From sequence record NC_041878.1: a stretch of 64,000 bases of DNA. One strand, written 5' to 3'. The translations under genes were made by a program, and so were the position numbers. Numbering within the stretch: the first letter of the stretch is position 1; the number at the start of each line of letters is the position of its first letter. The notes below the pieces were generated by a model. It worked only from the letters and a program-made list of their open reading frames with translations. It was not told the DNA's origin and searched no databases. Of the stretch, positions 3,431-60,628 are shown in pieces.

Positions 3431-3474
3431 TAATACTAAATAGAAGGTCGTTATGGATAACGACCTAATTTTTA

Positions 3475-3503
3475 TGAAACGTACCAAAATTTTATGGTAT
3501 AAT
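3475..3503 (+). promoter_or_regulatory. early/middle-type promoter TGAAACGT-N10-TATGGTATAAT
   Basis: Matches the 7-copy consensus; preceded by hairpin aggtcgttat-gg-ataacgacct (~3445-3466). Confidence 0.8.
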
Positions 3504-49105: not shown

Positions 49106-49133
49106 AAAAAGGAGCCATTAGGCTCCTTTTTTT
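49106..49133. terminator. bidirectional terminator
   Basis: AAAAAGGAGCC-atta-GGCTCCTTTTTTT. Confidence 0.9.
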
Positions 49134-49866
49134 ATGATATTTTTGTACCAGGATAAATTGTACTTAAATTAAAACCTGAAATATCAAAATATTGACCAGT
49201 CCGTAATCTGTAACGGTCTATGACCGCATACGACGACTGAGGGTTAGCTCGACCGAAATTTCCAATTATAGCAAGGTCTTGCCATGTTGTTCCGGTAATA
49301 TTAAATGAAAATTCTTCAACAAGAATCCCATTTTTGAAAAAATATAATCTTCCGTTGAGATATTGAATAGCATAGTGATAGAATACATTACTTATGTAAA
49401 CATTTGATGATACGTTTCCTGCGTACAATGCCCCACCTGAATTCTGAAATACTTGAGTTGTTGAAAAATGATCTATTTCAAAACGTGTGGAGAATTCTTG
49501 ATTAGAAATATTGCTATTGACAAATATAACTGGACAATATGCAACACCATCTGTTACAACAACATTTTGTTTCACATAAAAATCAAGACACCATGACGTT
49601 GTAAAAATGCCTTGAGCCGTAGATTTAAAAGTACTGATGTATCCTTGATTTAAATTAATTCCTGAACCAAATGGAGAACCAATTCCTAATGATGGAGTAG
49701 TTCCATTAAGCTGGAAAACTACATTACCGACTCTCATTGTGTTTCCTGCATAATCAGTAAAGCCATTACTATTGAAAATTGATGAGTCATATGCAATAAC
49801 TTCATTTCCAGTATACCAACGTGCTATAGTGTTCCCGTATTCAAACATTCTTGGAAATGGTAACAT
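49132..49866 (-). CDS. concanavalin A / LamG-like domain protein (likely virion)
   Basis: WCLDFYV, HYAIQY.NG.LYFFKNG and IDRYRL motifs. Confidence 0.6.
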   Translation of the reverse strand: MLPFPRMFEYGNTIARWYTGNEVIAYDSSIFNSNGFTDYAGNTMRVGNVVFQLNGTTPSLGIGSPFGSGINLNQGYISTFKSTAQGIFTTSWCLDFYVKQNVVVTDGVAYCPVIFVNSNISNQEFSTRFEIDHFSTTQVFQNSGGALYAGNVSSNVYISNVFYHYAIQYLNGRLYFFKNGILVEEFSFNITGTTWQDLAIIGNFGRANPQSSYAVIDRYRLRTGQYFDISGFNLSTIYPGTKIS

Positions 49867-49867
49867 T

Positions 49868-50344
49868 TTATCCTCTCTTAATCTTTGTCATATCTAAATC
49901 ACCAGATTTAATTAATTTACGAGCTTGATTGGCTCTTTTAGCAGTATTGGATTCTGGAGTTATACCAAATGATTCTAGTACTGAACATTGTTGTGCTGCT
50001 GGAAGTGCTTTGAACTTCTTAACATCAACAGTAAGTGCAGTATGATGTATATGTGTTTCAGTATAGTCCTGTTCATAATAGTCTGCTAAATTTCTTAAAA
50101 CCGTAGGTAAATCTTTATCAGTTAAATGTTTAATGTATCTATCGAATGCGTTTTGTACTTTACCTTCGAAAGAGTTTACTGTACGATCTAGTACTGCCCG
50201 ACATTCTTGTTCACCTTTATGATTATGGTCTAGAACAGGGTCTTGTACTTTCTCTTTGATAATTGGATCTAATCCTTTTTGACTTTTAAGTAATTCCTGC
50301 CTGTACTTGGCAGCTTCTTTAGAATTTTTTAATCTCTTTCTCAT
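49868..50344 (-). CDS. gp49: recombination/packaging endonuclease VII, T4 gp49-like
   Basis: LDHNH, N.FEGK and L.NLADY...DY...IH align with T4 EndoVII; same length class (158 aa). Confidence 0.8.
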   Translation of the reverse strand: MRKRLKNSKEAAKYRQELLKSQKGLDPIIKEKVQDPVLDHNHKGEQECRAVLDRTVNSFEGKVQNAFDRYIKHLTDKDLPTVLRNLADYYEQDYTETHIHHTALTVDVKKFKALPAAQQCSVLESFGITPESNTAKRANQARKLIKSGDLDMTKIKRG

Positions 50345-50387
50345 ATGTACCCCAAAAAGTTTCCATATTGTATTTAATAAAATATCT

Positions 50388-50416
50388 TGGAACGATGAAA
50401 AATTTTGTGGTATAAT
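50388..50416 (+). promoter_or_regulatory. early/middle-type promoter TGGAACGA-N10-TGTGGTATAAT with no downstream gene
   Basis: Perfect consensus copy facing a ~700-nt region with no credible ORF. Confidence 0.8.
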
Positions 50417-50419
50417 ATG

Positions 50420-51100
50420 TTAGTAAAACCCTGCTTGGCGGTACGAAAGTACTGACAAAATAAACCTGATCCTATCGAAAATGTAGATGGCAGATGAGAA
50501 GTTCAAGCAGTTCGCAGTGCAGAAGACACCCGTTAGGAGATGGCATAGTTTGTACCACCCACGGCAATACGGCACTATAAAGAAGTACACTAGACTTGAT
50601 AGTACTTCCTCGATAGATATATAGGTTCGCACCCTACCAATAAGTTAAGGGAGTTTATCTGGATGATAAATTTGCGATGGATTTTTGTACAATATTGATC
50701 CGTCTAAATTTCCAGATGAATAGGTACTGAGTTTGATTGTATAGACTTAGTGCTGAGTGTGGTTAGCCCACGACCGTTACTATATGAACTGCGATAGAGA
50801 GAAACAGAGTAACCCGCTTTCATTCTACCTTGTAGAAATTCGCAATACAATGAATCGACGACTATCATCGTCAGATATAAATCAGTACTTTAAATAGTAC
50901 TTTTTTTACGCCTTCATTCCCCTGCGGGGGGATGATAGAATCTCTACAAATCTCGTCAGTAATAAATGTGTTAAACGTACAGAATGATATGAATTGAGTT
51001 GTCTCAGTACAAACGTAGTGCAGTACAGAACAACGAAAATTCTTTGACATTCGAAGAATGGCAAATCTCAATCTTATAAAGAGTACAGAAATTCAGACAC
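50420..51100 (+). ncRNA. candidate large structured non-coding RNA (or origin-priming transcript)
   Basis: Dedicated promoter; no RBS-led ORF; many stems with G-U pairs, a GAAA and a cUGCGg tetraloop; possible 3' ends near 50907 or 51127. Confidence 0.55.
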
Positions 51101-51127
51101 AAAAAAACCAGCACTAAGGCTGGTTCT
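51101..51127 (-). terminator. terminator (long T-tract on the minus strand, possibly bidirectional)
   Basis: Minus strand reads AACCAGC-cttagt-GCTGGTTTTTTT, starting a few nt after the TAA at 51131. Confidence 0.8.
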
Positions 51128-51130
51128 TTA

Positions 51131-51349
51131 TTATCTTTTATTTTCCTTTTTGACCTTTTTATTGTATTGCTTCACCAACAGGTCACGGTCAGTCACAGGC
51201 ATATTGAGTAGCATTTCATAGCTAGTATTCTCAATATATACAGAAACCTCCATTAAACCATTTTTTATATCTTCACAGTTCATACGAAGGTCTGCGATTT
51301 CCTGCATAATTTCTTCTGGTTCAGAAATTAGAAGCTTTGTTCGAAAAAA
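51131..51349 (-). CDS. hidden -1-frame ORF downstream of the gp26-like gene (G/GT 'T' or gp51-like domain)
   Basis: The -1 frame is open from the UUUUUUC slippery site to TAA 51131. It encodes RTKLLISEPEEI then MQEIADLRMNCEDIKNGLMEVSVYIENTSYEMLLNMPVTDRDLLVKQYNKKVKKENKR (58 aa from ATG 51307, below the track cutoff). Confidence 0.75.
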   Translation of the reverse strand, partial: FFRTKLLISEPEEIMQEIADLRMNCEDIKNGLMEVSVYIENTSYEMLLNMPVTDRDLLVKQYNKKVKKENKR

Positions 51350-52185
51350 TTGCTAGGATCGAATTGTAGATTCTCGATAGTCCATTCATGACCACAACTA
51401 GAACATCCAACATCCATAGTATGACTGACACCAATATTATTGATTAAGTCAGATTTTTCACGGATTTGTTTTAGAATAAATGCTGGTTGTGCACCTAACC
51501 ATTCTGCAATAAATTCACGTTCAGTGATTTTATCCCCTTCCACAGTTTCAATACTGTCAATATTTGCAACAATCATATCAAAACTTAGCTTAGTCATTTC
51601 TTCAAAAATTTGACTGAACATTTCCATTTTTTCTTCATCACTCATCTCTTCTAGATCTTCTAGCATACGAGCTTTCTTTTGTTGCTGGAACATTTTTTGT
51701 CCAAATACTGAATATTCTTCCCATGTATGAGGTTTGAATTTTAGTAGCAATCCACCAACATCTTCTAGTAGAAGTTCAGGTTGTTCTTCTAGTAATTCTG
51801 CACTATCAAGTAGGAATTGTAGGTCACGCTCAAATGCACCGTGATGACCACATTCAGGACAATCTACTTCAATGTGATATTCTCTTTCTTTGGTTGCTAA
51901 TTTGATACCGATTAGAAGCAACTCAACATCAGGTACAAATAGTTTACGAGCATCACCAATGTTAGGAACACAATTCTCAATAACATTCGCTACTGCTTCA
52001 CCATTCATTAATGCATCTGGATTGTTAAACATTAATTCATCTCTTGCTGAACGAGCACAAATACCACATTCAACTGTATCATTTACTAAAACACCAGCAG
52101 GATATTTGATAACATCATTACTTACTAGTTTAGTATAAAGTACTTCAACCTTTGTGTACTTTGATAAAGGGTTCATCTTATTCAT
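51328..52185 (-). CDS. gp26: baseplate hub / tail assembly chaperone, T4 gp26-like
   Basis: CPECG and CSSCG motifs; D.E.LL..IK.AT pattern; TATAAATA at 52238-52231. Confidence 0.7.
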   Translation of the reverse strand: MNKMNPLSKYTKVEVLYTKLVSNDVIKYPAGVLVNDTVECGICARSARDELMFNNPDALMNGEAVANVIENCVPNIGDARKLFVPDVELLLIGIKLATKEREYHIEVDCPECGHHGAFERDLQFLLDSAELLEEQPELLLEDVGGLLLKFKPHTWEEYSVFGQKMFQQQKKARMLEDLEEMSDEEKMEMFSQIFEEMTKLSFDMIVANIDSIETVEGDKITEREFIAEWLGAQPAFILKQIREKSDLINNIGVSHTMDVGCSSCGHEWTIENLQFDPSNFFEQSF

Positions 52186-60558: not shown

Positions 60559-60599
60559 CGCATTTCTGGAATCCATAAAGTAAATAGCTCTATAATGTA

Positions 60600-60628
60600 T
60601 GAAACGTATACATTTATTATGGTATAAT
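60600..60628 (+). promoter_or_regulatory. early/middle-type promoter TGAAACGT-N10-TATGGTATAAT
   Basis: Matches the consensus. Confidence 0.8.

Follow-up and report, generated by a model that had tools for sequence, protein, structure and literature searches.

A Probable New Family of Large Pseudoknotted RNAs, Present Five Times in the Genome of Jumbo Phage CBB and Singly in Enterobacterial Islands

An ORF-Free Interval in the Genome of Phage CBB

What is encoded by the only long stretch free of open reading frames (ORFs) in a 64,000-nucleotide (nt) part of the genome of Pectobacterium jumbo phage vB_PcaM_CBB (NC_041878.1; the whole 64-kb part is hereafter the window, and positions refer to it unless a record is named)? 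Phage CBB (KU574722.1) is a 378-kb Rak2-like myovirus. A scan with ORFs of at least 75 amino acids (aa) leaves 50345–51327 as the sole ORF-free stretch of at least 300 nt in the window, in agreement with an initial annotation of the sequence, which had noted a single long gap in otherwise densely coding DNA. The gap itself, 50345–51130, corresponds to 174345–175130 of KU574722.1 (window position 50345 being record position 174345), where the GenBank record carries no annotation at all. The initial annotation read this gap as a large structured non-coding RNA (ncRNA) with its own promoter. The comparative analysis described here indicates that it is almost certainly a gene for a real structured ncRNA of a new family.

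Comparative Evidence for a Structured RNA

A blastn search recovered the interval from 65 phage records at 69–93% identity, with genome sizes of 337–386 kb among those listed; most of these phages are named as Rak2-like in the literature. Compensatory changes are visible by eye in a first alignment of 13 syntenic intervals. Further counts come from alignment A3 (29 sequences, including copies from pattern scans of IMG/VR) and from an alignment of 65 representatives, obtained by clustering at 94% identity, among which are metagenomic and chromosomal copies. RNAalifold predicts 89 pairs on A3, 55 of them with compensatory double changes, and a helix scan of the alignment added long-range pairings that cross this nested structure. 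The resulting curated model comprises 115 pairs in 19 helices, with four pseudoknots. Counted on A3, its cells hold standard pairs in 94.4% of cases, compared with 37–42% when the partners are slid by 1–3 columns; changes on both sides occur in 72 of the 115 pairs (21–29 in the slid controls), and the covariation score reaches 0.407 where the controls give about 0.05. On four of five measures the observed value is attained by none of 500 shuffles; on the fifth, further pair types, 2 of the 500 attain it. The minimum free energy fold of 50423–50910 also beats all 100 shuffles (z = −3.98). The covariation among homologues of the syntenic interval, which the initial annotation had proposed as a check, is therefore present.

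The same data point to one strand. In the 65-sequence alignment, G·U or U·G fill 628 cells versus 236 for A·C or C·A, and G·U is retained as G·U at 50733–44, 50735–42 and 50799–819. Since conserved G·U pairs would be A·C mismatches on the opposite strand, they fix the strand, and the structured molecule is the plus-strand transcript. In raw nucleotide identity the RNA is not exceptionally conserved, as the flanking genes also align at 64–77%.

The region is non-coding, judging by its pattern of variation. Variable columns per codon phase number 107/201, 117/199 and 114/203, showing no 3-nt periodicity, and 185 of 198 indels in pairwise comparison are not multiples of three. In related phages, several annotators have filled the interval with small "hypothetical proteins", which would favor a decayed coding sequence, a set of small ORFs or a DNA-level repeat in place of an RNA gene; however, the ORF calls vary between genomes, and compensatory changes together with G·U pairs conserved on one strand have no explanation at the level of DNA or protein. 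We regard this alternative as scarcely credible. A Shine–Dalgarno-like UAAGGGAG followed by AUG in the window copy (copy A) was considered as a translation start and rejected, the arrangement not being conserved in the other copies of A3.

Architecture of the Fold

The model consists of a 5′ domain, a variable arm, a 3′ core and a 3′ extension (Table 1). The 3′ core contains the invariant strings CGACCGUU, GAGAAACAG, GAAACAG and AACCCGC, followed by CUAUCAUCGUCAG, and many further invariant unpaired nucleotides lie in junctions and loops. We propose to define the family by P9–P13 together with PKc and PKd and by invariant CGACCGUU, GAAACNG and AACCCGC, all of which are found in the window copy. 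A direct repeat, AUCAUCGUCAG (50865–50875) and AUCUCGUCAG (50949–50959), brackets P15–P16.

Several stems picked out by eye in the initial annotation have covariation support, namely CTGCTTG/CAAGCAG (P1), ACTGAGTTT/AGACTTAGT (P9), GTGG/CCAC (P10) and TTCTAC/GTAGAA (P13). Others survive in part. The stem of GGTAC-GAAA-GTACT (P2) covaries, but its GAAA loop, of the GNRA type, is not conserved; TCATTCCCC-TGCG-GGGGGATGA (P16) is conserved, but its changes are all either one-sided or of the G·U kind; support is weaker for TTTATCTGGA/TCCAGATGAA and its inner stem (P8), a variable arm absent from some copies. A hairpin does lie at 51040–58, but the register TTCTTTGA/TCGAAGAA is wrong and CATTC/GAATG plus TTTG/CAAA (P17) fits better. 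The proposed stem GACGA/TCGTC is canonical in 59% of cases and finds no support. As a whole, the fold drawn by eye was far simpler than the covariation model, missing P3, P4, P5, P6, P7, P11, P12 and the four pseudoknots.

Parts of the RNA appear to be exchangeable. The insert enclosed by P5 (50534–50559 in copy A; columns ~227–300 of alignment A2) occurs in a short and a long form, and the forms are swapped between paralogues A and B when CBB is compared with Serratia phage BF, which suggests exchange among copies by gene conversion. The P8 hairpin module (…UACAAUAU…GAUCCGUC) is absent from some paralogues and sits in the P13 loop in others. The palindromic loop UUGUACAA was considered as a kissing site and discarded, since the palindrome of copy A is not conserved in other copies.

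Table 1. Coordinates of the RNA, its structural elements, its paralogues and orthologues, and its neighboring genes (window positions unless a record or phage is named).
Feature	Coordinates	Strand	Remarks
Promoter	50387–50416	+	−35-like TGGAAC (50388–93), 17-nt spacer, extended −10 TGG-TATAAT (50408–16); consensus scan
5′ domain	50431–50636	+	P1–P7, PKa, PKb
P1	50431–37/50504–10	+	CTGCTTG/CAAGCAG
P2	50439–44/50449–54	+	GGTAC..GTACT; every pair compensatory
P3	50466–76/50486–93	+	invariant loop GAAAAUGUA; 95% canonical, 7/8 pairs compensatory
PKa	50498–500/50511–13	+	crosses P1; 100% canonical in 65 sequences, 2–3 pair types
P4	50516–20/50572–76	+	100% canonical in 65 sequences, 2–3 pair types
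P5	50530–33/50561–64	+	encloses replaceable insert; 100% canonical in 65 sequences, 2–3 pair types
PKb	50567–69/50618–20	+	pseudoknot of the 5′ domain
P6	50582–88/50602–08	+	every pair compensatory
P7	50622–25/50633–36	+	5′ domain
Variable arm P8	50654–50720	+	tip hairpin GAUGGAU-UUUUGUACAAUAUUG-AUCCGUC; gap fraction 0.3–0.5
3′ core	50721–50875	+	most conserved part; common to all subfamilies
P9	50724–35/50742–53	+	ACTGAGTTT/AGACTTAGT
PKc	50736–41/50846–51	+	P9 loop with strand 3′ of P11; 99.4% canonical, 6/6 pairs compensatory
P10	50758–62/50768–72	+	GTGG/CCAC
PKd	50776–80/50809–13	+	GUUAC after P10 with P12 loop; 100% canonical
P11	50790–94/50840–44	+	99% canonical
P12	50797–801/50817–21	+	100% canonical; loop GAGAAACAGAGCAACCCGC extremely conserved, engaged in PKd
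P13	50823–28/50832–37	+	TTCTAC/GTAGAA
P15	50884–50907	+	AGUACU/AGUACU hairpin and U7; intrinsic-terminator-like; possible 3′ end of ~485-nt isoform
P16	50914–35	+	UCAUUCCCC-UGCG-GGGGGAUGA, C4/G6; identity to majority base 0.83–0.84 over 50914–50959 (65 sequences)
Conserved single strand CAAAUCUCGUCAG	50947–59	+	repeats AUCAUCGUCAG, located before P15
3′ extension	50985–51066	+	GAAUU/AAUUC (helix scan), inner GUUGU/ACAAC (by eye, A3), then P17; A/B-type copies, different in others
P17	51043–65	+	UUUG-CAUUC-GAA-GAAUG-CAAA; 7/9 pairs compensatory
Bidirectional intrinsic terminator	51101–51127	both	terminator scan; common to RNA and convergent CBB_249; hairpin kept in orthologues
Copy C1	32283–32886 (KU574722.1)	+	without P15
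Copy C2	94224–94900 (KU574722.1)	+	
Copy A (window copy)	174366–175084 (KU574722.1)	+	
Copy B	258074–258788 (KU574722.1)	+	
Copy C5	336276–336840 (KU574722.1)	+	without P15
GAP32 orthologues	35.1, 98.7, 177.4, 261.4, 340.6 kb		collinear with CBB
BF orthologues	30.2, 92.9, 174.4, 258.7, 335.4 kb		collinear with CBB
fHe-Yen9-04 orthologues	24.5, 93.2, 174.2, 260.3, 334.7 kb		collinear with CBB
XbC2 orthologues	28.7, 94.6, 175.1, 259.1, 338.9 kb		collinear with CBB
Endonuclease VII, CBB_248	49868–50344	−	upstream neighbor, divergent from RNA; annotation and ORF list
58-aa ORF, CBB_249	51131–51307	−	downstream, convergent with RNA; annotation and ORF list
Structural protein, CBB_250	51328–52185	−	downstream, convergent; orthologues in related phages annotated as baseplate hub

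Promoter, Predicted Transcript Ends and Length

The promoter in front of the RNA was called perfect in the initial annotation. It is real and conserved, but it is an extended −10 promoter scoring 10/12 in a consensus scan, not a perfect consensus. An alternative register places TTGGAA from 50387, an 18-nt spacer and TATAAT at 50411–16, with TG at 50408–09. Promoters of the type TGRRAY-N17-TATAAT/TATACT, mostly with a TGn extension, precede the RNA in 57 of 64 family representatives, and the spacer is 17 nt in 41 of these 57. The promoter belongs to the "divergent RpoD-like" class of the CBB genome paper, whose members in CBB lie mostly upstream of DNA-synthesis genes (PMC5259590). Elsewhere in the window, (A/G)TGAAACG-N-TGGTATAAT at 552–581, 3474–3503 and 60599–60628 (plus strand) is of the same type and matches the same class. 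From the promoter, we infer a transcription start near 50423.

Both 3′ ends suggested initially, the AGTACT hairpin with its T-tract and the hairpin at 51101–51127, are retained as candidates. The RNA would be ~485 nt long if P15 terminates transcription and otherwise would run ~705 nt to the terminator at 51101–51127, the likely 3′ end of this longer isoform. P15 covaries (5/6 pairs compensatory in A3) but is optional: it is absent from ~40% of copies (gap fraction 0.40), among them the CBB copies at 32.3 and 336.3 kb. Conservation extends 3′ of P15 in the 65-sequence alignment.

Five Copies per Phage Genome

The element is not unique. A scan of the whole assembled CBB record with a profile built from A3 finds five copies, all on the plus strand, one in each of the five unannotated 660–790-nt gaps of the genome (copies C1, C2, B and C5 are loci L043, L044, L034 and L047, respectively). 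Promoter and core are retained in all five. Copy B continues directly into CBB_350, with a ribosome-binding site (RBS) present. Phages GAP32, BF, fHe-Yen9-04 and XbC2 carry five collinear orthologues each. In BLAST searches, the 121Q-like coliphages show three to four matching places per record, not five; with C2 as query, no full-length counterpart turns up in them.

Gaps between the CBB copies measure 61.9, 80.1, 83.7, 78.2 and ~51.9 kb on the 355.9-kb unique genome. The smallest amounts to 0.146 of the unique genome; by our own arithmetic, a smallest gap of at least this size has P ~0.005 if five points are placed at random on a circle. Given the collinearity of the genomes, this even spacing counts as one evolutionary observation.

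Copies in Chromosomal Islands

The family also occurs outside jumbo phages. A degenerate pattern of the core, scanned over metagenomes and one genome per species, returned 141 loci, 94 of which were confirmed by the profile; the 47 left unconfirmed by nhmmer look like chance matches in a test of P12 and on reading their sequences, possibly except L095. Chromosomal copies lie in the complete chromosome of Serratia fonticola GTA-SR07 (L183 3566–4270), on a large contig of Citrobacter amalonaticus (L177 3471–4165) and on further large contigs of Enterobacter chinensis, Silvania, Serratia sp. and Buttiauxella. In E. coli, 2 of 5,426 complete genomes carry the RNA, unannotated, in a ~10.7-kb island next to ffs; the copy of strain LR-29-1 is at L190 12001–12583. 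No copy was found among 72,556 plasmids. Of 50,697 phage records only 62–65 are positive, the number varying with the query, and all of these belong to the same jumbo-phage group. The family is thus confined to Rak2-like phages and to islands of the same host order.

The island copies are single, share the promoter type and the fold, and sit at the integrase end of small SOS-type integrative elements. A recurrent gene order is integrase (often a large serine recombinase), RNA, cI-like S24 repressor, Cro-like helix-turn-helix protein, unknown proteins and resolvase, with the RNA on the strand of the integrase and convergent with the repressor gene. Defense cargo of the islands includes Lamassu (L073) and a PADLOC candidate system, and the E. 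coli island carries a PDC-M45A-like protein. Among phage copies, copy A is the closest to the island RNA. At the protein level, phages and islands are linked only by DUF4326, which occurs in both, and by a 165-aa island ORF that weakly matches CBB_3 at 30%.

Four loci on metagenome contigs (L084, L102, L090 and L130, possibly joined by L095) form subfamily 2, which has the same 3′ core P9–P13, P16 and flanking direct repeats combined with an unrelated 5′ half. Both direct repeats are replaced in concert there, by ACCAACGAAG and ACCACGAAG. In L090 and L130, a terminator and minus-strand sequence that by eye resembles the downstream context of copy A follow. Xanthomonas phage XaC1 gives weak matches.

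Genes Around Copy A

The window copy has no co-oriented gene downstream according to the annotation and the ORF list (Table 1). Extra genes adjoin copy A in some relatives, and the element seems to have insertion hot spots at its borders. In Yersinia phage fHe-Yen9-04 (L006 2227–3033) an adenine methyltransferase gene is inserted just 3′ of the 3′ module of copy A, and in Salmonella phage Munch and Klebsiella phage fENko-Kae01 (L013/L009 506–1462) a 957-bp ORF lies between the endonuclease VII gene and the promoter. In CBB, a structural-protein gene, CBB_247 (49132–49866, minus strand), is placed between gp46 and the endonuclease VII gene, with no counterpart at the same position in GAP32, Kaldavass, XbC2 and BF.

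Comparison with Known RNAs

The initial annotation could not assign the RNA to a known family and suggested that it may be new, and the cmscan check that it proposed agrees. At the gathering score, Rfam 15 has no match anywhere in the window; at E ≤ 10 on 50300–51200 it returns only terminator-like small RNA models at 51036–51171 plus chance matches, and six relatives, island copies and subfamily 2 among them, yield none at E ≤ 1. Since Rfam 15 gives no match, the RNA is not ROOL, GOLLD, a group I or II intron, RNase P RNA, tmRNA, 6S RNA or HEARO. ROOL (RF03087) and GOLLD (RF01998) show no covariance-model match in the window, the region or the relatives. A group I or II intron is further disfavored by the RNA's own promoter and by its position between divergent and convergent genes. 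RNase P RNA, tmRNA, 6S RNA and signal recognition particle RNA lack Rfam model matches as well, and ARAGORN reports neither a tRNA nor a tmRNA. Part of the 3′ core (CCCACGACCGUU... ACAGAG..AACCCGC) resembles the RNase P specificity domain, and P16 with ACAGAG resembles the U6 internal stem-loop and ACAGAGA box; no Rfam model matches in either case, and we take both resemblances to be coincidence. Neither the CBB genome paper (PMC5259590) nor a review of jumbo phages from 2026, a survey of structured viral RNAs from 2023 or full-text searches yielded a description of the RNA, although unnamed models of that survey could contain parts of it. It is thus, with very high confidence on comparative grounds, a large pseudoknotted ncRNA of a new family that is absent from Rfam 15.

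ROOL and GOLLD, the large phage-associated RNAs, share with the CBB RNA a size class of ~500–800 nt, many helices and pseudoknots, carriage by phages or prophages, a function that is unknown and the lack of an associated protein gene. In contrast, the CBB RNA matches neither covariance model, forms five paralogues per genome and also stands beside integrases in small islands. Its family belongs to Enterobacterales, whereas ROOL and GOLLD are hosted mainly by Firmicutes or come from lake and rumen metagenomes. Both of these RNAs form RNA-only homo-oligomers (PMC12286853).

Two further phage RNAs invite comparison. In Pseudomonas phage PA5oct, a distant relative, RNA sequencing defined the 619-nt "putative lncRNA" ncRNA004 (PMC7318152; L191 1617–2235, MK797984 246116–246734). 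Like the CBB RNA, it occupies a long ORF-free gap of a related jumbo myovirus, has a similar length, lies on the plus strand and ends in a C/G-rich hairpin; nhmmer finds no homology and none of the invariant core strings is present, so we do not count it as a member of the family. Solo VIPR RNAs occur in lytic enterobacterial phages and in integrated satellite-like elements, where the satellite copy redirects phage machinery, and vrRNAs consist of arrays of 10–12 GGYNN repeats with a structured tail (bioRxiv 10.64898/2026.10.15.759431). VIPR RNAs resemble the CBB RNA as RNA genes without an adjacent protein gene in phages and integrated elements. However, their size and fold are unrelated: no (GGYNN)x4 occurs anywhere in the window even with one mismatch, and the region holds no tandem array.

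Possible Functions of the RNA

Granted that the RNA is real, we favor its action in trans over a role in cis as origin or primer, with a probability of roughly 0.6, a preference drawn from the comparative data. It would be transcribed by host RNA polymerase with sigma-70, which is likely because the same promoter type drives island copies in cells without phage. The convergent genes that follow copy A and the island copies argue for a free-standing product rather than a leader. Five copies, each with a conserved extended −10 promoter, could supply a high dosage. The folded RNA itself would be the functional entity, whether scaffold, decoy or catalyst, given the dense invariant unpaired nucleotides in its pseudoknotted core. 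By analogy, the most likely mechanism is a scaffold or decoy that would bind a conserved host or phage factor through invariant single-stranded motifs, candidates being GAAAAUGUA, CACGGCAAU, UAAGGGAG, CGACCGUU, GAAACAG..AACCCGC and the repeated YCGUCAG. The solo copy of an island might then mimic the phage RNA or compete for the same partner.

Several points weigh against this view. The scaffold or decoy mechanism is taken from analogy only, and the case for the RNA, its ends and its partner is comparative throughout. No conserved neighboring protein gene points to a partner, as no protein family is common to the phage and island contexts. The co-orientation of the five copies and their roughly even spacing (P ~0.005) are not explained by a purely trans-acting RNA and fit a role in cis.

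Such a role could be that of an RNA-primed replication origin, in which the transcript would form a persistent R-loop in the 3′ module near the G6 run of P16, be processed by an enzyme such as phage RNase H and serve a T4-like replisome as primer for leading-strand synthesis. Transcripts of T4 oriF and oriG stay hybridized to a DNA unwinding element and prime replication as an R-loop, and ColE1 RNA II is a primer with antisense RNA I at its 5′ end, on plasmids that replicate with host enzymes only; these mechanisms are established knowledge, applied here by analogy. With them the CBB RNA shares a non-coding transcript of several hundred nt, a dedicated promoter and carriage by a mobile element, and with oriF/oriG also multiple sites per T4-like genome. 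CBB would then have five origins over 356 kb, and islands would carry one for replication by a helper jumbo phage. The co-oriented, evenly spaced layout repeated in four other genomes, a promoter class linked mostly to DNA-synthesis genes (PMC5259590), the RNase H, UvsW-like RNA–DNA helicase and Dda encoded by CBB, the lack of a recognizable replication protein within 5 kb of the RNA in islands, and the confinement to Rak2-like phages and same-order islands, which is expected of a phage-dependent origin, all speak in its favor. However, the layout is a single observation among collinear genomes. Cumulative GC skew is monotonic and tracks gene orientation without origin-like turning points, which neither supports nor excludes origins, and the absence from plasmids counts against an origin that needs the host alone. 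Unlike a ColE1-type RNA II, the CBB RNA has no RNAI match on either strand (E ≤ 10) and no plasmid homologue, and membership in that type is rejected. The complexity of the fold also remains unaccounted for, as known primer transcripts need neither four conserved pseudoknots nor dozens of invariant unpaired bases, and the CBB RNA is far more elaborate, with conserved tertiary structure. We consider an origin unlikely, though it is the leading alternative.

In catalytic RNAs, unpaired nucleotides of a pseudoknotted core are typically conserved to an extreme degree, as is GAGAAACAGAGCAACCCGC of the P12 loop here, and the core could be the active site of a new ribozyme, self-processing or otherwise catalytic. 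Yet similar conservation is seen in large non-catalytic RNAs, no Rfam ribozyme family matches, and flanking exons, a repeated cleavage-site architecture or an associated processing context are lacking, making a ribozyme quite improbable. A cis-regulatory leader that would control read-through past P15 into downstream genes, as a giant riboswitch, attenuator or processive antiterminator, is suggested by the hairpin with U7 after the core in copies A and B, by the run of copy B into CBB_350 with its RBS and by the methyltransferase gene after copy A in fHe-Yen9-04. These two last copies are the only ones with a leader arrangement; the window copy and the island copies precede convergent genes, P15 is missing from about two fifths of copies (in CBB, from two of five), and conserved structure extends past it. 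A leader is accordingly a very improbable explanation, and we have not classed the element as one. The trans-acting RNA remains our preferred reading.

Significance

Only a few large RNAs of bacteria and phages are known to have a complex, conserved tertiary structure, namely the ribosome, RNase P, introns, tmRNA, OLE, ROOL, GOLLD, raiA and HEARO, and each of them revealed new biochemistry or remains a puzzle. The comparative support for the RNA described here is unusually clean, with ~19 helices, four pseudoknots and dozens of invariant unpaired bases. We see a minority chance, but one to be taken seriously, that it is either a structure-dependent RNA-primed origin system, with five origins per Rak2-like genome and one captured by islands, or an ornate self-assembling or catalytic RNA; if true, either would open a new functional class among the large RNAs of bacteria or phages.

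The RNA is accessible experimentally, being carried by phages that grow on laboratory E. coli K-12 (coliphages Sharanji and vB_Eco_slurp01, both with the RNA, list E. coli K-12 MG1655 as host) and by small chromosomal islands. The even five-copy layout poses a question of action in trans or in cis that lies within reach of ordinary phage genetics. For genome annotation, the finding concerns five gaps of ~700 bp per Rak2-like genome that are now blank or filled with spurious "hypothetical proteins". For the biology of these phages, the island copies suggest an interaction at the RNA level between jumbo phages and integrated elements.

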